This document shows, one piece after another, positions 9,254-40,562 of a DNA stretch of 64,000 nt. Numbering within the stretch: position 1 is the first letter of the stretch; the number at the start of each line of letters is the position of its first letter. Below the pieces are notes generated by a model that was not told where the DNA came from, did not search any database, and saw only the letters and a program-made list of their open reading frames with translations. The DNA comes from Entomortierella parvispora E1425 (Eukaryota > Fungi > Mortierellomycota), in contig BQFW01000001.1 of the NCBI GenBank assembly GCA_020891255.1, forward strand, positions 1,674,001 to 1,738,000, written 5' to 3'. A program made the translations under genes and the position numbers.

Positions 9254-12200
9254 CTACAACACTGCAGGTGTCCGGTCTCCTTTTGAAAGGTTCTTGGGCA
9301 CAAACTTTCGCCTCACTTTCTGGAAGGCTCTTGAGGAAGAGATGGGTCTTGTCTTTTGGCCTTGGTGTGAAGACAGTAACCTTTCTATTCTCTCGAGCTG
9401 TCGCTCCATCCTGTCCATTCGAGCAGAATCATCGGGCGGCGGAGGTGCCAACAACAGAGCTTGGCTCTGTTCGTATTGTTGCCACTCTTCCTCTGTCATT
9501 TCATGCACCTCTTCATGCGCCTGCACCTCTGCTCCCACGGGCTCTGACATCGTGGTGGTCACAGTCTCTTGCATCCCTGCTTCTTCTTCCCTTTGTGGTT
9601 CTTGAACCTTGCTTCGCCATGGGTCGAAATCTGTCGACTTGAAGCCGTCGTAACCAAAGGTCTCTTCAACTGTTCTCGTCTTTAAATCCACCAAATCGTT
9701 CTTGTCCACTCTATCCGCCCCATCTTCCTCATCGCTCTTTTCTTCGTTTCTCAATGGATCGTCCTTCATGTCCCAGCGTGCCTTGTACTCTAGAACTCTA
9801 GCTTCTGTTAGACAATAACAGATTTCCTTTGGAAAGATGTCATACTTCTCTCGCAGTCCTGAAAGTGAGCGAGGAAAAGAAATCAGAGGTTAAACAAATG
9901 AACCTGGGAAATGGTGCCGGCACCACTATGAATCAATCGCTCGCCATCCTAGGAGGACACCTCAAACGGATGGTTCTCTTCTTTGGACGTCATGGATTAC
10001 CTGGAATATGATAGGACATGTTCTCGGCGCTCTCGATGTACCAAAGTCGGTTTTCGAGAAAAACCAAGTGCCATGTTGTGTCGCTGGTGTTGAAGGCCAC
10101 ATTGATGAGCGCTACCAACAGGCGAGGTCATGGTAAGCACCCGATCTTCAAAGAAAGTGCCCTGCATACGGAGGTATAACAGTGACGTGAAGAACTATCT
10201 TACCAATCAGGACGTTCAGCATGAGGATTACCGTGAAGAACAAGTAGATAATCATCATGGTATGGAATGCATAGTTGTCCTCAAGAAAATCGTCTTGGAT
10301 CGGGTCGTACTTGCCGCCCTAGTAACGGATAAGGAGAATGATGAGAAATCGCACCTTCGGAGGTAAACGGCCTGTCTTTTTTTTTCTTTTTCTTTTTCTT
10401 TTTCTTTTTCTTTACCATAAAGAAAAAAGTGGCCGAGAAAGCTTCATAAGGGTTGGCAGGAAATCCGGTCGAGGGGGTCGGACAAGGTTCCTGGACGCAT
10501 CCTCGAAGGAGATGTGACAGAGCAAGCGTGAACGCCAGTATACCCACTAAAAAGATGATAAAGAACACGCGGATTTTGCTAAAGATCTGGACAATGACTG
10601 TCACGAACTGGCACACGGCTCTATTCACACGAAGTTCAAACAGCTGGTATCGGATGAACAAGTCCAACGAAAGTGGGGAAAGATGAAGATTAGAAACGTG
10701 TCCATATAAAAAAAAAATCCTTTGCTCGTATTGCGCAACCAACAAGCGTAAGGAGAGATGTGGATTACCAAATGAAGAGCGATGAAGAGGATGGAAAAGC
10801 TGAAAAGCCATGAATACGGCCCGCGCGGATTCTGAGAGGGGTCGTCATTAGTCGATGTACGCAAGTGGAACTGATTGATACAACCGCCTAGTGGGAGCGC
10901 AAACACGACCACATCGACGAGATTGTAGAGCAGAGATCTAGACATGCCGCTCGTACCGTTAGTTTCCATGTTCTTTGACTGTTGTAGATGCGTGGATATC
11001 AAAGTTGGTCAGAACTTGCTCTTACCGAACGTATCGGCGCGGATTGTGTAAAACTTGCGAGAGCTCCAAAAGCAAAAACAAGATTGACATGCCCGCAATC
11101 ACACCGAACAGCGCCGTGGACATATGAGCATCGTCGATCTGAAGAACAACAACGATAATGACCAGAAGGTAGTAGAAGCACTGAAGCATGAAACGGGTAA
11201 GCCAGGTATAAAATCCAAGAGTATACCTAGGGTCATGGCGGCAAGTGGGTTAATGAACCGTTCAAGACCCAGACTCGCGGAACGACTCTATGGCTGGGTC
11301 AAGGTTATTCTTTACCATTTGTACGAGATCAAGGCTGCCACTGCTAGGTTGTCAAAGGCGTCCAGGGGGAAGTCATGGCTCTTGATTTTGCGTTCTCGCC
11401 AAGGGCTGAGCCTGTAGATGGCAACAAAGACCGACATCTTGATCCAATAAAACACAGACGGGGGCACACCAGCTGGAAATGACGTCTTTGTGGGCTTGGC
11501 GGGCTCTCCGGTATCTGTCCAGATCACATTAAAAGTAGCAGAAAAGATCTCGTGCAAAAAAGTATCATTGCCTGGATCCTTAACGAGTTGTCTCTTCCCC
11601 AATGACTCTAGCTGTAAAATAGGTTCTTGGCATTTGAACAAAGGTCGAGGGTTGGGCTTCCAAAACATGGGTCGAAACTCTGGTGGGTGAATCAAAGCAT
11701 GGCGCTCCATGATGAAAGATCTAGAGGGAACAGGGACAAAGGCCATTCGATGCAAGGTTGACTTTGCCACCTCCGAGTGTGGTGATTTCTTGTCCAGAAG
11801 AGTGGGCAGACATGCAGCGACCGATGCCAAAAAATGGGTGCTTTGATCCTCCTTTGCTTTTTGCAGACAATAGTTCCAGAAGAGCCTGAATGCCTTCATG
11901 TGGATTGCGTCCGTTTTGGCCCTGTCGAGCAAAAACTCCGTTGGGTTGAATCCTGTCCTCAATTGTGGTATCCACCGTCCGTCCGGGAGAGTCAGGATTT
12001 TCTCTAACAGCTGGTCACGTCTGAGAGAATATTTACACAGCAGCTCCATCGTTGTCATCTCAGCGGTGTCTGTGATAACCATCTCGCTTGTTTTGCTCTG
12101 TTGGGAAGTAGGCCGATTAATGTGTCTATTGAGATAATTGACATGTAGGTGAAAATCCTCGTGTGTTGTCCAAGACGGCATCACCGGGAGGGGTTGTCTC

Positions 12201-14998
12201 AGCGAAAACAGGGATTTGAATTGGCACCGTGGATGAGCCACATAGAGTCGTCCATGTGGGCATTGCTTTATCAACTTGCACGGCTTGCCGTTGAAGTATT
12301 CTTGACGGTCATGGTACTTGTTGTGTTTCGGAAGACCCCCTTCTTCTTCTTGGTAGTGAATCGAGATCAACATAGGATCTTCTGACACTGTTGCTGGCAT
12401 CTGAAGGACTTCAATGTCATCACTATCAATCACAACCAACGACTGGTCTTTGGGAGAAAACGTTGTAGCGCTACCAAGACTTAAACCAGGAAGTAAAGTT
12501 GTCCGAGATGTGCCCCAGTTGTCGGAAATAGTGAGGGCTAGCCCGCGTTTATCAGGATCGAGCTTGACCTTCTCGATCTTGAAGCGGAGACCAATCTCGT
12601 CATCTTCATACGTCAGGATGTTATCCTTCACCTCCTCTAGATTGGCCAGGCACTCGTCGTTACAAGGATTGGGCTTCCACAGGTTCGGACCAAGTAAAGA
12701 GTTGTCATTCACTATCGATTCAAAATTTGAGTTGTTTTCTGTCATGTGCACTACAGCAGCTTGGAGTCCGGGATCACGCAGTCGATACGTCTCAGTCAAA
12801 TCCTCGCCATCAAGGACGCTGCCTTTGTCGGTATGAAATTGCTCATGCCTCCCATTCACAGGCCGAATGGCACTAGAACGATATTTGATTGCCAGCCGCG
12901 CGCCTGTTGCTGAACAATATGATACTATAGAGTCTTGCCTGGTTTCCAGGAGAAACGCGGCGTCCTTGGAGAGGGCTATAGTACTCATCATATCCCAGTG
13001 ATGGCGGTCAGTCTTGATAATGCACTGGACCCGACCAGTGTCAATATTCCAGACAGAGATGCTTTTGTCGCTTTCATCTCGACTGAGAAAGAGCCGCCCT
13101 TGAATGGATCGCAGATTGTTCACGGTAACCGTCCAGATGTGCTTCCAGGGTCCTTGAACGCTGAAAATTTTGACGCAGTCCTTTGTCAGAATCAATATCC
13201 TCTCTTCCTCTGGATCGTAGTGTTCGCGGCCCTTTGCCCCGCTATGGAAGGTTGCGGCTCCATCCAGGTCCTCGTTTTTCAAGGCGTCGAGGTTGGTCGA
13301 GCTCCTAAGCTTTAACGGTTGGTTTGAGAGAGTGGCACTCGCTGGGTTGATCTCAAACACCTTCAACATCTGGTCTTCGTCGTAGAGGGCGACTTGCTTT
13401 CCATCCCACGATATTGAAAGCCACGGAATGGTGCTGCTTTGAAGGACGATTGTTTGCGAGATGGCACAGGGCCTTGCTGAACGGTTGCGCAGGCCAGTTA
13501 CCGATTGTTGTAAATTCGGTATCTCCTGAGTCATATTGTTCAAGTCCCAAATCTCGAGAATTGTGGATCTGTATGTGACCAGATAGTTACCACTTTCAGA
13601 GATTGCGTAGGCCGAAGTGTCTGCCTGGCTCTGATTAATCTTGAGATCGACACTCCACTTCCAGCGCGGGCGATGGATTCGAGCAGTGGCGTCTACAGGA
13701 TCATAGGGTCATAAGGAATTCAATTCACGTTTTTTTTTTTTTTTTGCGCATCAGTCAATTTCTTCAACACGATACCTGTTACCCAATCCCTTGTTCCTTC
13801 TGGATGTAATTCCAAGTGGTGGAGATAGATTACCCTAGGTTGAAAGTTTCCAGACACAGGCTTGAGAGTAAAGTCGATCCTCCATTGAAACGAGCGATTC
13901 CCCGGCGACTCAAACTTTAGGAGACTATCAAATTTCCAAAGCAAAGTACCTTTCTCGCCATCACGAACTAAGAGAAAAGAGGGATGCGGGGGAAATATTG
14001 AGATGGTCAGATATTCACTTGAATAAGAAGCCACAGGCAGTCATATTTCATTCAATTGCTTCACTGAACCAGGCTGTTCGTACACATCTCATCTAAAGAC
14101 TCGGCCTCAATCACCTAAACACAATGTCCATGAACGCTTCTCCCGTAAGTCTTGATGTTGATGTTGCTTTTCAAAAAAGATATCCCAGCTTCCATCCAAC
14201 GATAAACAAAGCTCTCTTTGCAACTAACCTCACAATTGTTATGAAACTGGATGGTGATCATCTCAATGTCGGGAATGCACAAGTTTTGGGAGGTGGACAC
14301 TCCTATGACCACTTCGTACTTTTGCTCATGGTCCAAACCATCAACGTCCACCTGTCCCTGGTTCATAAATCAGCGCAACTGGTAAGATTTACCATTCCCG
14401 GAAACAAAGAGCGAGGGACGTGCTGCAACTTACAGACACCGCCTGGAAGCGATCGACAGCCACCGCAGATGATCCACTATTAGCAATTAGGATAGAACGT
14501 CAGCGTGTTGCTTCAAAAATAAGAATGGTCATGCATCTCTCTGGTTCGATGGCTCGTGCGACGCTCTCTTAGTTACACTGTGGTGCATTCTAGCTGAATT
14601 AATCTGGTTCTGTCTATCGATGCAGGATAACAGAACCCAATGGTTCTGTCCATCGATACAAGACGAAAGAACCGACGGACTGTGGATTGAAACAAACGAA
14701 AGAGTTGAAGTTAGACCGGCCAGGCAGACTTCAGTCTACACATTGTAAGGAGCTTTAGACCAGACCAGACTCCTTGTCAGGACTCACAATAACTTGAGCT
14801 CGACCCTTGGGAGACGCTCTCGTCGTTAATGTCAATGGCACTCGGCTGATCGGAAGGCGGCTGAATGGTGAGGGCCTCGACTTGACTATCACTATTGTCG
14901 CCGGGGCCATCATCCCTGAGCGGATCAGGCAGCGGATTGGCAGATGGTGCGGACGCGTCTTCGTCTATGACAATGACGGTCGATACTGGCCGGGACAT
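9254..14998 (-). CDS. WD40-like repeat + TRP-like (ion transport domain) channel protein, multi-exon; 5' exons approximate
   Basis: Large exon 11312-13600 with WD40-like repeats (LEIWDL, WDGKQVALY, ISVWNIDTG); transmembrane exons (WYTLGFYTWLTRFMLQCFYYLLV; YNLVDVVVFALP; LFELRVNRAVCQFVTVIVQIFSKIRVFF; pore-like FSATFFFM/AGKYDPI; MMIIYLFFTVILMLNVLIALINVAF) and post-S6 TRP-like WHLVFLENRLWYIESAENMSY; frames join at GT-AG introns. Confidence 0.8.
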
Positions 14999-15321
14999 GT
15001 TAGTGAGCTAGGCAAGACAAGAAACGGATAGAAAATGAAGGAAGGAAGGTAATAGCCGAAGGAGAAGGGAAAGAATAAAAAGGACAAAAGAGCACATCCG
15101 GTCAAGAAAGGAAGCCTCAGACGGCCCCTAAACTCAGTGGCAAGGCAAGGCAAAGCAAATCAAATCTTCATTTTTTTTTTTTGTCTTTTCATAGCCACAC
15201 GTTTGACTGCACGATGTTTTGGCAAAGCTGCAGTCCGAGCCCATCTCCCTTTCTTTCTTTTGTCTGGTCTGTCTTTTTCTTTGTTCCCACACTGCACCCC
15301 ACCGCTCCCGCAAAAGACACA

Positions 15322-17211
15322 ATGGCCAGCTCCCAGACTTGAGCTGCTCAACGCCCAGTCCCTGCTACGTCCCAACAAACAAAGAGCCGCGGATGACAAC
15401 ATCCAACTCGGCAGTGGCTATAACCAGATTTCGGATGAACTCAGCAAGAATAAGCTCGATTCTGCCAACTTTGATGCCATCGAAACCATCTACTTTGACA
15501 ACAATGTCGAGTACAGCTCTTCGGAGTCAAAGTGCAACCAAGGATCGACACGCCATGCCGATGGCTCTCTTGATGTCAAACTTGTTCCCTTCTCTGCTCA
15601 AGTGGCCACCTCATACAAGGACAAAAGGGAACTTGACATTGGTCACGCGAAGATGCGTCGTGAAGAAACGATGCGAACGAATCCGACTGAAGCACGACTG
15701 TCATTGGGACGATGCCTCGATTGGTGACTACGGCACTGCGTATTTCTCAGATATTTACTATGGTGGGGTCTTCACCATTGAGATGGAGACGCAGTTGAAT
15801 GATACCGTGGATAAAATAGATATCCAGGGAGAAGTCACTGCAGGATATGGTGGCCAATTATGGGCGAAAGCCAACGCCCGTTTTAACAAAGAAGACTCAC
15901 AGGACTCCAACGTTTCTTTGAGGTGCAAAGGGAGGGGGTTTTTTTAATCTAACAAATGAGTGCTTCACACTAGAGAGTGCTTGACCGCATCAAATGCGAA
16001 TGCCTAGAAGACGTGGTCACAGGTGAAAGGATGCTCTGGGAGGCAGCTGATAAAGTGGGGATCATTGCCTTTGGGAGGGAAAGCGTTGGCAAAAGTCGAC
16101 ATCCAAAACATATTTTTCCTGTCCATCGTCTGATAACCACGGTACTCGGAAGGCAATTGAGAAGATCTACATTCTGGAGAACAAGAACCGTGTAGGGCTT
16201 TACGACACCCCAGATCTGAGTCCGAGCTATTTAAAAAACTCTGAACAAAACGCTGAATATCTAGTCGAGAGACTGCCAAAGGGAAAACACCTTAAAGTGT
16301 GTCTGGTGGGAAGAGCCGGGTTCAGTGGTATCAATGCCATTTCGGCGATAGGACTGCTCTTCAAATATCTTGCTAGCAAGTCGTATGGCTACGGATCCGT
16401 ACTCAGTTCGGGAAATGGCCCTGTCAAGGTAACGGTGATCGTCAACATGTATGATGGAGAGTACCTCGACCGGTTGACGGCCACCGATTTCAGAGAGATG
16501 TACCAAGCTATTGTCAAATCAATTTCAGTCCACAAAGTGCGTTTTACAATTCAGCAAATGATTACTGTTGCGGAATCGCTGGCATCAACAGCGGACCGCC
16601 TTGTGGAACTCGTCAACAGCGAGGCCGAGACAAAAGAGTTGAAGTTCAGACCTCCTTCCGCTCGGGAGTTTGATCCTGCCCTCAAAGCCATGCCCTTATC
16701 AAACGAAAGCATTGTGTATGTGGATCAGGCTTCTTTCTTCCTGAGGTGTCTTGCGCCAAATCCTGTTGACTTGACAATTCCTCTTCACTTGGGAATTGCG
16801 TTGACGATTGCTGGGCTTAGAATCAAACAGAGATTAAAGTCAATTGACCATGAGCCGACCGCCGAAAGGATAATCCCAGTGTACGTTATAGAAGCAAACG
16901 GTAATGCTCTCTTCCATTTCAAAGAATAGTCCCCGCAGCCTGCAGAATAAAAAAAGCTAGTATCAAACTATCTAGTTTCCATCGAGTACAGGGCACAAAA
17001 GCTGCGTAGGATACCTGGCGCGACTGAAGAGGACATTGCTTCCATTCACAGGCTGGATTGGAAGAGCAAGAGCCAGACCTATGGCGATCGATGTCCATGT
17101 ACAATTCCTGTCAACAGGATGAGGTCTACGTCAACTGAATCGACAAACCTCAATCAAATGCTCTCCAGACACGTCAAGAAGAAGAAAAAAAAAAAGTACG
17201 ATGATGTGTGA
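15322..17211 (+). pseudogene. Frameshifted gene with an N-terminal MACPF/CDC-like pore-forming region and a degenerate P-loop GTPase-like region
   Basis: ATG in strong context at 15322 reads MASSQT* but an adjacent frame continues LELLNAQSLL..QLGSGYN; another frame carries YGTAYFSDIYYGG (MACPF signature Y/W-G-T/S-H-F/Y-X6-GG with H>A); later IIAFGRESVGKS(T) and YDTPD lie in different frames. A putative last exon (intron about 16901-16975) ends at TGA 17209-17211. Confidence 0.55.
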
Positions 17212-17227
17212 AAGAGATCTATATTTT

Positions 17228-19030
17228 TTATGAGCGGCTCTTCTCCTGCTTGGACTTTTTGGCCGTATGGAGTTCCATCTCTTCTGCATACCGCTGCTTA
17301 TCCTGGGCCGCCTTCTTTTCCCATGGCCTTTTGTCCGCCTCAGACATCTCGGCCCACATCTTGGCCGCTACCTTTGGGATGGCCTCATTAGGATACTGCT
17401 CTCGGATCTTGGCGCTTTCACTGGATCGAAAGTAGAGAAAGGAACCAATGGGGTGCTTAGGGGCACCAGGCTCCTTGGCTTTCTTCTTGTTCCCGCGACC
17501 CTTGGTTCCCTTGCCGTTGATGGCCACGTCTCCACCCTGGTGACTGTTGTTGCCATCGTGAAGACCATTGCTAGCTGTAGCGTCCATACTGCCGGGTCGG
17601 ATGTTGTGGTTGTTGTTATTGTTGTTGTTGACCGGAGCATTCATAGGGGTCATCACCGGTGGCTGAGAGATGGCCTGCACATTGATATTGTTGTTGCTGT
17701 TGCTGTTGTTGTGGGCGTTCGCTCCGCCATGTCGACCAGCTCCTGCTTTCCCTGTGCTTGTATGGGAGGGTATCGATGAAGTCGCGGGTGTGGCTACGGG
17801 TGCTGATGGCGCAGTCGTAGTGGTAGTCGTGGGGGTCGATGACCCTTGTCCCGAAGCTGAGGATCCCGTTGCAGAGGAATTAGTACCGCTCCCAGCGCCA
17901 CTGCTGCTACTGCCAACGCGACGACGATGAGCACCCGAAGCTGCGATCTGGGCTTTGCTTCGACGGGAGTAGACATAGTTTGGATTCTCCTCCATGAAGC
18001 TCTTCTTGATGATCGCCGCCTTCTTGGTATATTCCGATTTCATCTCTGGGGTCATCTTGGCCCATTTTTGACCAATTGCCTGTGAAATCTCACTGACGGT
18101 CAAATTGGCATTCTCGAGCAAGAGCTTGTGGCGCATCTCCTGATTAAAGATCAAGTACGAGTTCATGGGCCGCCTAGGTCGGTTGGGATCCAGACCTGTG
18201 CTGGGGGTATAGCTAGTACCTGTCTCAACCTGCCACACAAGAGATTTTCATAATGTAATGTTAATCACCAAGTTCAAAACAAAAAAAAACCTCCCTCCCT
18301 CCCTCAACAGCTATGGCGCTGGCTTCCACATTCATCAACACTTACAGGGGCAGCAGCCGCCTTGGCCTTCTTGGCAGCACCTTGATCAGCTTCTGCAGCA
18401 GCTCGCTTTTTCGACATTCGAGTGTACACGTAGTCTGGGTTGGTTCGGTTGAACAGATCCTTGATATCCTTTGCGCGATCGGTATAAGTACTCTTTCGCT
18501 CCTATAGTTCAAAGGAAAAGAAAAGAAAAAAAGGAGTAATTGTTAGAATCCGTCAACGAGTAAATGCCTCTGGGCATCATTCATCCAAGTCAATCATAAA
18601 ACTTACAGCTGACATCTCCTGCCATTCCTCTCCAAGACGCTTACTGAGAGCAGCGGTCTTAAGTTCAGGATAGAGTTTCTGAAGCTCAGGGCGGCGAACA
18701 CTCGAGAAGACCAAGAAAGCATTTGGAGGCCGTTTTGGTTTCCCAGAAGGATGCACGCCAGGTACCGATAGGGGCAACGCAACAGGTGGCGGGTTGTAGT
18801 ACTGATGCGACTGCTGCTGTTGCTGTTGAGCTTGAGCCTGCAACTGTGGCTGCTGTTGTTGCTGCTGGTGCTGTTGTTGCTGAGGTGTCTGGATCTGCTG
18901 TGTGCCAGAGGGCTGCGATGGATTAGAGCCGGGCATCTGCTGGCGCTGTATTTGGTGCTGCCTCAAAAGCGCCTGTTGCTGCTGCTGTTGTTGCAATTGA
19001 AGCTGGTGCATCTGCGATGGAGGCTGCTGT

Positions 19031-19062
<32 letters not shown>

Positions 19063-19114
19063 TTGCATCTGAGCCTGAAGCTGCTGCTGCTGCTGCAACA
19101 TCTGCGCTTGAGCT

Positions 19115-19147
<33 letters not shown>

Positions 19148-19756
19148 AGTTGCTGCTGAGCCTGTTGCTGTTGTTGCTGCTGAGCCTGTTGTTGCTGAAG
19201 CTGCTGACGTTGCTGTTGCTGCTGCTGTTTCGTCAGTTTCTGGGAGGACGTGGGGGGTAGGGCAGGCATCACGGTTCGCGCCAATGGTGTAGCCATATTC
19301 AGATCAGGAACTACGACCGGCGCCACTTCCTCTGGCACCTTCTTTTTTCTTCCTCGTCCTTTGCCCTTGGGCCTATCAGTGTCCGTACCAAGCGCAGGGG
19401 TCAAGATTGGTGCGGTTACTGAGTGGGTTGGTGGGAGTGAGACAGGCTGGGAGACAGGCTGCGCAAAGGTGCGAGGCGTTACATCCATGCTTTCGTGTCT
19501 TTGGTGTCTAAGAGACTGCTGCTGCAAAGGCGGCTGTACCAAAGGCTGGTGTTGTTGCTGTTGCTGCTGCTGCGCCTGCTGCTGATGTTGCTGATGTTGC
19601 TGGTGTTGCTGAGGATGCTGTTGTTGCTGTTGGTGTTGTTGATTTGGTTGATACTGATGCACACCATGCTGCTGCTGTTGCTGCTGATGCTGTTGCTGTT
19701 GTTGCTGTTGTTGCTGTTGCTGCTGCTGCTGCTGCTGCTGTTGTTGTTGTTGATGG

Positions 19757-19797
<41 letters not shown>

Positions 19798-21794
19798 GAG
19801 TTGGTTCTGGAGCATTTGAGGTTGCGAGGGCTGATGCTGCTGAAAACTTGGGTATTGCTGTTGGTGTTGAGCCAAAGAAGCAGGTGTCAAAGAGTTGCTG
19901 TACATTCGGTTGTGTCCACTCATGGCAGTCGAGTCCATGCCTCCGTATGCGGTTGGGGAAGGCATTGGTTGTGCAATATTTACAGCTTGCCGTCCTGCCT
20001 CCGGTGATGGCACATTATCCATGCTGATCTTGGTATTCTTTTTGCTTTGAGCAGCCGACTTCTTTGGCATTGCGGTCTTTGGCATTTTCGATTGCTTCTT
20101 CTTAGGGTCCAGCTCGAGCGCCACCGCCTTTGGAGGAGGCAACTGAGGTGACTCCTTGGGTGTGATAACAGACTGGCTAGGAGGTGTCGACTGTTGGTGG
20201 TGTTGATTGTGCGACTGAGGCTGTGGAAGAATAGCATGGGGTGATGGATACTGCTGTTGGGGCGACTGTTGCGTCGAGTGGTATGAGTATGGCGACTGAG
20301 GCAATGGCTGCTGAAGATGCCGTGAAGGTTGTTGTTGCTGCTGCTGCTGCTGCTGTTGCTGTTGCTGAGGGTGGGAGGGGTTATTTCCAGCCAGACTAGC
20401 TCCAAGCATGATGTCGCTCTTGATGCCCATGGCCGAGGTGGCAGCCCTCTGGTCATACGCAGACAAGGGCTGGTTTTGTGGTATCGCTGCAGAATTATTT
20501 CCCAAAATATGACTATTGGACCCAGATCGGACATCGTGTTGAAGTCGATTAGGAGCAACAGGGTTGGGTCCAGGTCTTGAAGGCTGGTATCGGCTGATTG
20601 GCTGCATTTGATTTCCATGTGGTGTCCCATTCAGAGGAGAATAGACCTCCAGCGGACTACTTCCTTCATTTGACAGCAAGTTTCCTCCCTATATTAACAG
20701 GACAATACGATTAGTTCAGGAAATATAGAAGGGCAGACATCTGTTCGCACATATTTCTCCAAAAGACCGAAGAATGTTACCTCGTCCTCTGCACCATATG
20801 CATTTCGTAGGTTGGAGATATTGGGCATTCCAAAATTGTTTGCCGAACCAAAGTTAGAGTTTGGTCCAGTAGAAAGCGGCTGATCCAAGTAACCACGACC
20901 TCCTAATGAGTTAACGCCACCGAGCGGGGTTGAGGGTTTAAGCCCTGGTCCCGACAATCCAGGCTGAGTGGGTGTCTGTTGTTGACGTGGAAGCTGTGAA
21001 GCTGGAGATACGACGGCAGGCGAAAACCCATGCGATCCTCCTTGGTGACTTGATGGGTGGTGGGAATTATAGGCCGCCTGCTGTTGCTGCTGTGGTTGCT
21101 GTTGTTGTTGTTGCTGTACTGGGGCCTGCTGTGCCTAAAGAAGATTATAAAAATAGAAATGTCAATCAATCGGTAAATCAATTTTTTTCTGCGCCATGGC
21201 TCTGGAGGGCCTCGGTAAATGTTGAATACCGCTACTTACTCGAATATGAGCAGGTGCCTGGCTGTGAGGTGGAAACAAAAAGGCCTGGTGTTGAAGCTGT
21301 GGTGGTGGCTGTTGCTGCTGCTGTTGTGGCTGCGTTGGTTGAGAATATTGCGAAAGTGAGAGCGAAGCTTGCGAGGCCGAGTGATGTGGTTGAGGTTGGG
21401 GTTGTGCCATGATGTGAGAGAGCTGTCCATTGGGGTGAGTCTGACCAAAACCTGCCATATCTGTTGGGTTGCTCCAGGTCCCGCTTGACATGTTTCCGTA
21501 CGGCAGCCCACTGCTTTGACGAGCATCCCTGTTGTCAAACTTGTAGCTGTTTGTGGCAATGTTACTCAGACCAAAGGCATTGTTGTTATTGTTGCCACTG
21601 TTGCTGTTGGCATTGTGGTGCAAATGAGCAGCGTACTGCTGTTGTTGCTGCTGACTGTTGTGAAGACCCGAAATCTGGTTGGTAGCTCCTGGACCCGCGC
21701 CAGTATTGTTATTCGCCTGTTGAGGATGTGGTGCATATGGTCGCGCGGCAGCAGAGCCAAACGGTCCGTGCGGATTGTGGCTGTGATATGCCAT
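17228..21794 (-). CDS. PolyQ-rich transcription/chromatin factor with three HMG boxes
   Basis: HMG1 KPKRPPNAFLVFSSVRR..LSKRLGEEWQEMSA|ERK..NPDYVY; HMG2 RPRRPMNSYLIFNQEMR..ISQAIGQKW..NPNYVY; HMG3 APKHPIGSFLYF..VAAKMWAEMSEADKRPWEKKAAQDKQRY; upstream Q/N/H-rich exons join in frame from ATG 21794. Confidence 0.88.
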
Positions 21795-38216: not shown

Positions 38217-40159
38217 ATGTCTTCAGAAAAGCCTACAGTCGAGAGGCGGTCCTACCGCAAGATCATCATCGGGGGTGTTGTCGCTGCTGTCATCGCACTG
38301 GCACTAATCTTTGGTCTTGTGTTCGGCCTTCGACACCACAAGTCGGCGGGCCCCGACACGGAGTCCTTTGCTGAACCCTGGAACAATGCTTCGCAGTTCC
38401 TTCTCAGCAAGAACTTCACCATCACAAAGACCCCCACCACTCGTTACTATGAGTGGAATATTAGCCAGCAAACCATCGCTCCCGATGGTCTTGAACGTCC
38501 CATGCTGCTTGTGAACGGTAAGAAGGGTGACTTTTCACGGTAGTTTAGAAGTTTCGGGTCGGATGGTACTCGTATTAAACTCTGGCTTCTCATAGGCATG
38601 TTCCCCGGACCTCTGGTCGAGGCCAACACTGGTGACCAGATCGTTGTCAAGGTCACGAACAGCATGGTCAACGGCACTACTATCCATTGGCACGGCATGT
38701 ACCAGAACGGTAGGTTTTATTGACCGTTTGATACTCCTTTCTCGCAATATCAATCTTGAGCGACGCACTTATTTCATCTCCATCACTACTCGTGTGATCT
38801 CTTCGCTATTCAGGCACGAATTGGATGGATGGAACTATGGGTGTGACGCAGTGCGCAATCCCCCCTGGTCAATCCTTTACATACAACTACACTGTGGCCA
38901 ACCAGTGGGGAACATACTGGTGGCACGCACATGCTGCATCGCAGTACATCGATGGTATTGTTGGCCCACTGATCATCCACAGCCCCGATGAGCCCTACTT
39001 GGACCAGTATGATGAGGATATCATCATGATGGTCAGCGACTACTATCACACCGACTCTGGCGCCTTGGTTGCCTGGTACCTGAGTGCCGACAGTCAGGGT
39101 ACTGAACCTGTTCCTGACAACGGTCTTATCAACGGTCTCAACACTTTTAACTGCTCCGGAGATGCCAATGCTCTGTTCCCTACTGGGTTCAAATGCAGTG
39201 ATGGAGCACCCCTTGCCTCGTTCGACTTCAAGGCCGGCCTGACCTACAGAGTCCGAATCATCAACTCTGGTTCTTTTGCTGACTTCCAGTTCTCGATCGA
39301 TGACCACATGCTGACAGTCATCGAGGCCGATGGTATTGACATGCAGCCCGTTGCTGTTCAGCGTCTCCCTATTCATGTCGCTCAACGTTACTCTGTCCTG
39401 GTCCATGCGAACCAGACGGTCGGCAATTACTATGTCCGGGCTACGATGAACACCAACTGCTTCAACACCCCTAACCCGGCGTTGAATCCGAATGTTCAGG
39501 GTGTCATCCATTACGAAGGTGCACCCGTCACCCAGGACTTTAACTCTACTGACTGGACTACCTCTAGCTGGTCCGCTATCTGTATCGATCTGGCCTTGGA
39601 TATGCTTCACCCTTACGCTGCTCAGGCAGCACCAACCCCCGATGTTTCGTACGAGATCAACTTTGCATTCGAGACTATCAACCAAGCAGGAATCAACCTT
39701 GCTTATGTGAACAACACCTCTTGGTCTCCTCTCATGACCGATGCGACCTTGTTCCAGGCTCAGAGAGGAGTCACACTCTTTGATGCCTCGCAGCTGATCG
39801 TGACACTCAATAGCACCAATGTCGTCGAGCTGATCTTGAACAACTATGATGAAGGTTCTCATCCTTTCCATTTCCACGGCCATACATTCTCCGTTCTGGG
39901 ATGGGGTGGTGGAAGCTACATCCCTGGAAAGACTGTCCTGGAGTTGGACAACCCATTGAGACGTGATACCATCACGATTCCTTCCTTTGGATGGACCGTG
40001 GTCCGGTTCGTCAACGATAACCCAGGCTTGTGGACCCTCCATTGCCACATCGACTGGCACATGGAAGCGGGTTTGTTGATGCAGTTCGAGTCCTTGCCCG
40101 AACAGATCAAGAAGTTCCAGATCCCCTCTGAACTCACCGCCATGTGCGGAGCAAAGTAA
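38217..40159 (+). CDS. Multicopper oxidase (laccase-like) with N-terminal signal anchor, 3 exons
   Basis: All four Cu-binding motifs: TTIHWHG, YWWHAH, HPFHFHGH, HCHIDWHMEAGL; N-terminal hydrophobic segment IIIGGVVAAVIALALIFGLVFGL preceded by basic residues. Confidence 0.95.
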
Positions 40160-40562
40160 ATACCCATAATTAATAAACATAAGCATCATCAAACATCATC
40201 CGCTGTTGCAAACAAACCGGAGATCTATTCCTATGCTATTCGAATATGTCCCTCTCCCTGTCTTTCTTTTTTTATTTTTTTTTATTTATGTACATATATT
40301 GCTTGCTGAGGTCAGAGCAGCCGAGATGGTTAAGACGTTGACCCACATATTAGTGTATTGTGCTATCTTTGAGGGTCGACTAGGAAGCTCAGTTAAGCAT
40401 GGGCGGAGCAAGTGAGAGGTATTTCTCGACTCGCGCAATGACGGGAGCCATCATGGACGTCTTCTGCCTTTCATCACATGATCATGTTCATTTAGGCTCG
40501 CCTGGGGAGGAAGAACGGATCGTTTCATTCTTCCCTTCTGCCCCTCAAATAATTCTAAGACC

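Follow-up and report, generated by a model that had tools for sequence, protein, structure and literature searches.

In animals and plants, MACPF pore-formers and GIMAP/AIG1 GTPases both serve as modules of immunity or cell death. The MACPF fold consists of a bent, four-stranded central beta-sheet and two flanking helical clusters, TMH1 and TMH2. In Perforin-2/MPEG1, a MACPF domain and a membrane anchor near the C-terminus are combined in one polypeptide; MPEG1 is a type I membrane protein of the secretory pathway, with a signal peptide and no GTPase. Tail-anchored GIMAPs are composed of a G domain followed by a C-terminal hydrophobic anchor, and we know of no GIMAP with a MACPF domain. We found no single protein described as joining the MACPF and GIMAP/AIG1 modules, and a full-text search of a literature collection that is itself incomplete returned no description of a MACPF-AIG1/GIMAP fusion.

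The window, i.e. the entire stretch of 64,000 nt of Entomortierella parvispora E1425 DNA that was analysed, harbours the remains of a gene on its plus strand, at positions 15322-16929. They take the form of four reading-frame pieces that all match one natural protein family. This segment is probably a young, single-copy pseudogene of an undescribed Mortierellaceae family, whose members comprise a MACPF domain, a G domain resembling those of AIG1, GIMAP and Toc34 proteins, and a membrane segment. A preliminary description of this DNA had proposed a fungal protein with MACPF and P-loop GTPase moieties, and the complete natural relatives have exactly such an architecture; the C-terminal membrane segment of the family was absent from that description. 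The features of the locus are the following.

15322-15342, plus strand: remnant start, with an ATG in good context, ASSQT and then a TGA (15340-15342) in frame 1; contains break 1
15341-15631, plus strand: piece A, frame 2, MACPF-like N-terminal part including DDNIQLGSGYN; tblastn E 2e-9
15626-15640, plus strand: break 2, where homology moves from frame 2 to frame 3; adjoins a CAAAAGGG run
15633-15922, plus strand: piece B, frame 3, MACPF-like core; tblastn E 1.5e-22 and 1.9e-27, Pfam MACPF E 0.07-0.1
15923-15975, plus strand: GT...AG segment of 53 nt, joining frame 3 to frame 2 in phase (phase 2)
15976-16096, plus strand: piece C, frame 2, linker helix and P-loop G1 GRESVGKS at 16073-16096
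16094-16100, plus strand: break 3, where homology moves from frame 2 to frame 1 immediately past GKS; adjoins a CAAAAG run
16096-16929, plus strand: piece D, frame 1, 277 codons and a TAG (16927-16929); remaining G domain, eroded hydrophobic segment and tail
16930-17211, plus strand: 3' flank with an 86-codon open frame (16951-17208); outside the gene

Most of the pieces lie where they had first been read. The ATG at 15322 opens frame 1, which the TGA soon closes, and homology continues in frame 2, in agreement with the break initially placed at about 15337. Frame 2 is open from 15302 to 15724 and encodes the ELLNAQ...DDNIQLGSGYN piece, as reported; piece A aligns with residues 2-83 of a Mortierella antarctica protein by tblastn and in the alignment. 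Frame 3, open from 15300 to 15944, carries the MACPF signature YGTAYFSDIYYGG exactly at 15729-15767, the position originally given. Piece B corresponds to residues ~90-186 of the relatives and retains 32 of the 57 positions that are invariant in three of them; its last residues, VSL, align with their VSI(K/N)CRC strand. After the GT...AG segment, frame 2 reads ...VGIIAFGRESVGKS up to 16096. The P-loop piece singled out at the start, IIAFGRESVGKS, finishes at the same nucleotide, with the G1 pattern GxxxxGK(S/T) present as GRESVGKS, and beyond the break frame 1 does carry on for 277 codons that include VGLYDTPD. This last frame is open from 16054 to 16926 (291 codons). Piece D reads STSKTYF...VGLYDTPD...IPVYVIE..., with NMYD at the G4 position and the conserved IPVY tail at 16873-16884.

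We performed searches with the window pieces taken singly, or with the natural intact relatives as queries. On their own, the pieces gave no significant match in NCBIfam or in PDB sequence searches. They scored 13.2-13.7 bits against Pfam MACPF, below the gathering cut-off of 21.5, and matched neither AIG1 nor MMR_HSR1 of Pfam. A word search with piece D found nothing, in a length window that leaves out full-length relatives. Such weak Pfam matches (E 0.07-0.1), with nothing in NCBIfam or the PDB, are what one would see if the MACPF and P-loop resemblances were chance motifs in non-coding DNA. However, when the proteins of the relatives were compared with the window by tblastn, all four pieces were matched colinearly, each in its own frame, with E-values of ~1e-9 to 1e-27 against full-length natural proteins; those of piece D, which was also matched in the HMMER search, ranged from 1.6e-17 to 3.4e-27. 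The family profile in turn matched the genome at the window locus with an E-value of 6.9e-22. All four pieces match the same natural proteins rather than unrelated ones and are thus not chance occurrences. We thus give practically no credence to the chance reading, which is already refuted.

An exhaustive HMMER search with the 277-aa piece D yielded three true relatives (P0002-P0004). Its best match, P0001, was discarded: it is a HAMP-repeat protein, matched spuriously through its repeats. Among the true relatives, P0003 is annotated as a hypothetical protein of M. antarctica and has a length of 641 aa. Searches seeded with P0003 and with the family alignment raised the family to seven members in 5.8 billion protein clusters: one from M. 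antarctica, two each from Mortierella sp. AD032 and Dissophora ornata, one from a Logan assembly and one from ENA. All named members belong to Mortierellaceae, and several members are cut by contig ends. All are annotated as hypothetical proteins, and a Pfam domain (AIG1) had been precomputed for just one of them. What is listed as a '385-aa protein' from Logan corresponds to exon 2 of a full-length gene with exon 1 just upstream. This full-length member is present in the Logan assemblies SRR5213859 (L006, 2228-4240) and SRR5822800 (L007), where a prokaryote-style gene caller split it at the conserved intron into genes of 273 and 385 aa.

No relative was detected in metagenomes, scanned once with piece D and once with the family alignment. 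Within the 38.9 Mb genome of E. parvispora we found neither an intact paralogue of the family nor any other Pfam MACPF match, and the window shows no synteny with the M. antarctica or AD032 loci. The same genome has 14 AIG1-like matches, eight of them above the Pfam cut-off, which are separate from the MACPF-linked G domain; open-frame clusters of these occur on contigs C13 (669-679 kb), C14 (1548-1557 kb) and C15 (306-310 kb). No earlier account of a MACPF-GTPase-anchor architecture was found either, which suggests, as absence of evidence only, that these proteins form an undescribed Mortierellaceae family.

The complete relatives are ~641 residues long and are composed of a MACPF-like domain, a helical linker, a G domain, a hydrophobic segment and an IP[VI]Y tail. 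According to their hydropathy, their N-termini are hydrophilic and devoid of a signal peptide. The MACPF-like region spans residues ~12-230. Scanned alone, exon 1 of the M. antarctica gene scores 23.6 bits against Pfam MACPF (cut-off 21.5) and is the only one among the members to exceed the cut-off; the score is 13.0 bits for the AD032 copy, and there is no match for the Logan copy. The top PDB match of the family profile is the MACPF domain of Toxoplasma perforin-like protein 1 (TgPLP1; 5oup, E 0.014); this profile took in the window pieces, and the alignment covers the signature and the subsequent Gly/Ala/Ser-rich stretch. Protein-language-model neighbours (Atlas) of residues 1-275 are the MACPF_SNTX, Thiol_cytolysin and MACPF clusters, with scores of 0.94-0.95 and 185-194 shared features. 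The family version of the signature is (F/H/Y)GTAYFSDx3GG, the His of the signature being replaced with Ala in every member, window copy included. AlphaFold2 modelling of the intact M. antarctica protein from a seven-row alignment gave a mean pLDDT of 46, with values below 50 over the MACPF domain, and the MACPF exon alone (six rows) gave a mean of 34; these low values are due to alignments of only six or seven rows. The sequence comparisons nevertheless support a MACPF-like identity for the N-terminal domain of the relatives.

The G domains of the relatives harbour the G1 motif GNARAGKS and the G3 motif DTPG. Pfam MMR_HSR1 is matched by six of the seven members and AIG1 by four; the scores of the relatives are 23.8 for MMR_HSR1, against a cut-off of 21.9, and 23.6 for AIG1, thus below its cut-off of 27. 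The M. antarctica AlphaFold2 model was informative in Foldseek for the G domain only, whose moderately confident part retrieved Toc34, Era, GBP1 and the IRG Irgb6 at E ~1e-5. The structural check suggested beforehand therefore bears out the GTPase half of the proposal, as Toc34, Era and GBP1 were found with the model of an intact relative. A Gly/Ala-rich hydrophobic segment of ~45 residues follows in five of six relatives, with 19-residue Kyte-Doolittle maxima of 1.9-2.3, and the proteins terminate 9-30 residues past the conserved IP[VI]Y motif.

The genes of the family have two exons separated by a single conserved phase-2 intron after codon ~272; in AD032, this intron is 110 nt long with the donor AG|GTGAG. 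The GT...AG segment at 15923-15975 coincides with it in position and phase, and the intron-like segment initially noted at 15923-15973/5 is thus found at the family position. Without its splicing, frame 3 would reach a stop at 15945-15947. The GT at 15923 could be the original donor, if an internal deletion kept the frame, or a cryptic one within what used to be coding sequence. The window copy thereby belongs to the family by its colinear homology over the MACPF part, linker, G domain and tail, and by the same intron position and phase. We also considered whether the three breaks might be short introns. This was rejected for break 1, as no GT precedes the frame-1 stop, and for breaks 2 and 3, where homology to the relatives is unbroken to within ~3 residues. 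Together, these observations leave no room for introns.

The damage to the window copy begins at its start. The only ATG, at 15322, is followed by a stop after six codons in frame 1, and upstream of the MACPF region the homologous frame 2 lacks an ATG. The second break had been placed at about 15705, and homology relocates it to ~15626-15640: the end of piece A, ...SYKDKRE, corresponds to ...SNERKS in the relatives, and the start of piece B, LTLVTRRCVV, to EIYTCRVI. At break 3, three residues (QLL) of the helix that follows the P-loop in the relatives are absent. Both of these breaks adjoin CAAAAG, i.e. A4 runs.

Other losses are in frame. The end of exon 1 in the window copy (...NVSL) aligns opposite ...SVSI(K/N)CRC of the relatives, near residue 186, in both the protein and the DNA alignments. 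The ~82 codons that should follow (positions ~187-269 of the relatives), which encode the last portion of the MACPF domain and some of the linker, are missing, and the linker has ~13 residues fewer than in the relatives. The MACPF domain of the window copy is thus neither complete nor contained within one open reading frame. The DxxG motif of G3 is lost: the window copy has DTPD at 16204-16215, aptly called degenerate from the outset, vs DTPG in all six of the seven relatives that cover the region. Two residues of the invariant ANSGN...DHA block are lost. Approximately 25 residues of the hydrophobic segment are gone, and its 19-residue Kyte-Doolittle maximum of 1.48 falls short of the mean of at least 1.6 used as a criterion for membrane segments. 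Overall, the window copy retains 40 of the 89 family-invariant residues (positions invariant in at least five relatives); the most divergent intact member retains 80 of 124, and the others at least 88%.

Not a single stop is found within the 509 homology-supported codons, which indicates that inactivation was recent. These codons offer 211 possible stop-creating single changes, and the probability of observing no stop would be 0.25 if neutral divergence amounted to 2%, and 0.03 if it amounted to 5%. The 27-41% identity of the window copy to its relatives mostly reflects earlier divergence as a gene. The in-frame differences might also be peculiarities of its lineage, in a divergent copy that was once functional, instead of signs of decay.

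The lack of stops also fits a gene that is intact in the organism and codes for a divergent but functional member, the three breaks being local assembly indels. The A4 runs next to breaks 2 and 3 are prone to sequencing error and to real slippage alike, and the 20 contigs for 38.9 Mb suggest a long-read assembly. However, at the rate of the locus, three breaks per ~1.6 kb, more than 20 would be expected in the eight ORFs of 406-743 aa of the window, which total ~13.7 kb, and these are all uninterrupted. Furthermore, 13 of the 14 AIG1-like matches elsewhere in the genome are open without stops, and the fourteenth has one TAA. The uninterrupted long ORFs and the open AIG1-like genes exclude a general assembly indel problem. 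Indel errors would also leave unexplained the missing ~82 codons, the three helix residues, the glycine of DTPG and the loss of most of the membrane segment. We consequently regard an intact gene as very improbable. The preliminary description, which had left recent pseudogenization and assembly indels as its two options, argued from small breaks between intact flanks. The intact flanks find support in the long window ORFs; as for the breaks, they are not the sole damage, as in-frame losses have occurred as well. With the other ORFs uninterrupted, and with in-frame losses and lost motif residues accompanying the frameshifts, recent pseudogenization is the better of the two options. In the assembled genome, the window copy is unable to make the family protein.

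It might instead make something shorter that is used, from the long frame-1 ORF at 16054-16926, whose first ATG is located well inside it, or give rise to a non-coding transcript from a shared divergent promoter. An open frame of 291 codons is unusually long for a dead gene, and the promoter region is common to an upstream gene that appears intact. Against this, the product would be devoid of the P-loop and have a G3 without its glycine. Few of the family-invariant sites are conserved. The exact window ORFs that were tried are also absent from a collection of 15 billion proteins, which carries little weight. We hold a used product of this kind to be unlikely, and the window copy, as a recent pseudogene, most likely does nothing.

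At its 3' end, the gene stops at 16929 just past IPVY, as the relatives do. A last exon ending at 17211 had been put forward, and by eye one can place an intron at 16901-16975 that keeps the frame and reaches it, but this exon has no homology support. The 16951-17208 frame matches neither the family (tblastn) nor Pfam, and it ends 17 nt short of the stop of a convergent HMG-box gene. We read the 16930-17211 segment as 3' flank and not as part of the gene. The convergent gene, at 17228-18238 on the minus strand, has two HMG boxes (E 5e-30) in an ORF of 336 aa, which also contains long low-complexity runs rich in Asn, Thr and Ser. It is followed at 18577-20679, also on the minus strand, by an ORF of 700 aa whose C-terminal end carries an HMG box (E 2e-11). 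Upstream, a gene in head-to-head orientation has its first exon from ~14998 and comprises an uninterrupted ORF of 743 aa (11312-13543, minus strand). The label of 'WD40/TRP-like channel' given to it previously is unsupported in one Pfam scan, which returned no match at E <= 0.001. Elsewhere in the window, ORFs of 460 aa (38810-40192, minus strand) and 444 aa (38825-40159, plus strand) run antiparallel over the same 1.3 kb, and at most one of them is likely to be a real gene.

For the intact family only, we infer a role as membrane-anchored pore-formers gated by their G domain in cell death or defence, because of the analogy with GIMAPs, GBP/IRG proteins and fungal NTPase-controlled executors. 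The intact proteins would be anchored to the cytosolic face of a membrane through their C-terminal segment, and the nucleotide state or the dimerization of the G domain would license oligomerization and insertion of the MACPF domain, so that the proteins might serve as a cell-death or defence device. The patchy presence of the family and its decay in the E. parvispora genome fit the birth-and-death turnover typical of such genes. It is conceivable, if rather doubtful, that the intact relatives represent a new cell-autonomous, membrane-anchored perforin with a GIMAP-like GTP switch, involved in a Mortierella-type cell death or in defence against endobacteria, mycoviruses or non-self hyphae, that evolves by birth and death and of which the window holds a freshly dead copy. 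If these proteins were indeed GTP-gated intracellular pore-formers, they would represent a new mode of control for a perforin-like domain and would extend the emerging view of innate immunity in fungi. The window locus itself is a dead copy, of value because it points to the family and documents its rapid turnover.

Compared with the MACPF/CDC superfamily (PF01823, fungal pleurotolysin B, TgPLP1 5oup and stonustoxin-type PF24674), the family shares the signature, (Y/W)G(T/S)H(F/Y)x6GG in the former and (F/H/Y)GTAYFSDx3GG in the latter. It also has a GxGY(N/H) motif near the start and, after the signature, a Gly/Ala/Ser-rich stretch and a CRCxGG strand, and its Pfam, PDB-profile and language-model matches all indicate this superfamily. 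It differs by the Ala in place of the signature His, the absence of a signal peptide, the shortness of the domain (~230 aa) and its fusion to a G domain and a C-terminal membrane segment; in the window copy, the end of the domain is missing.

With the AIG1/GIMAP/Toc34 GTPases (PF04548 and PF01926), the relatives have in common the G1 GNARAGKS and G3 DTPG motifs, matches in sequence and to the Toc34 structure, and, as in GIMAPs, a G domain followed by a C-terminal hydrophobic anchor. Nevertheless, their AIG1 scores are below the Pfam cut-off and only one relative has an Asp at the G4 position; in the window copy, G3 reads DTPD and the frame breaks after GKS. Like Perforin-2/MPEG1, the family joins a MACPF domain and a near-C-terminal anchor, but it has no signal peptide and its G domain is intercalated between the two. 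Lastly, both the G-domain subfamily and the effector domain differ from those of the GBP/IRG proteins and of the fungal NTPase-controlled executors. The likeness is one of analogy: GBP/IRG proteins couple an NTPase switch to membrane damage, with GBP1 and Irgb6 matching the G domain structurally, and the fungal executors, NLR-like proteins with HeLo-type or other N-terminal membrane-damaging domains, would follow the same switch logic.
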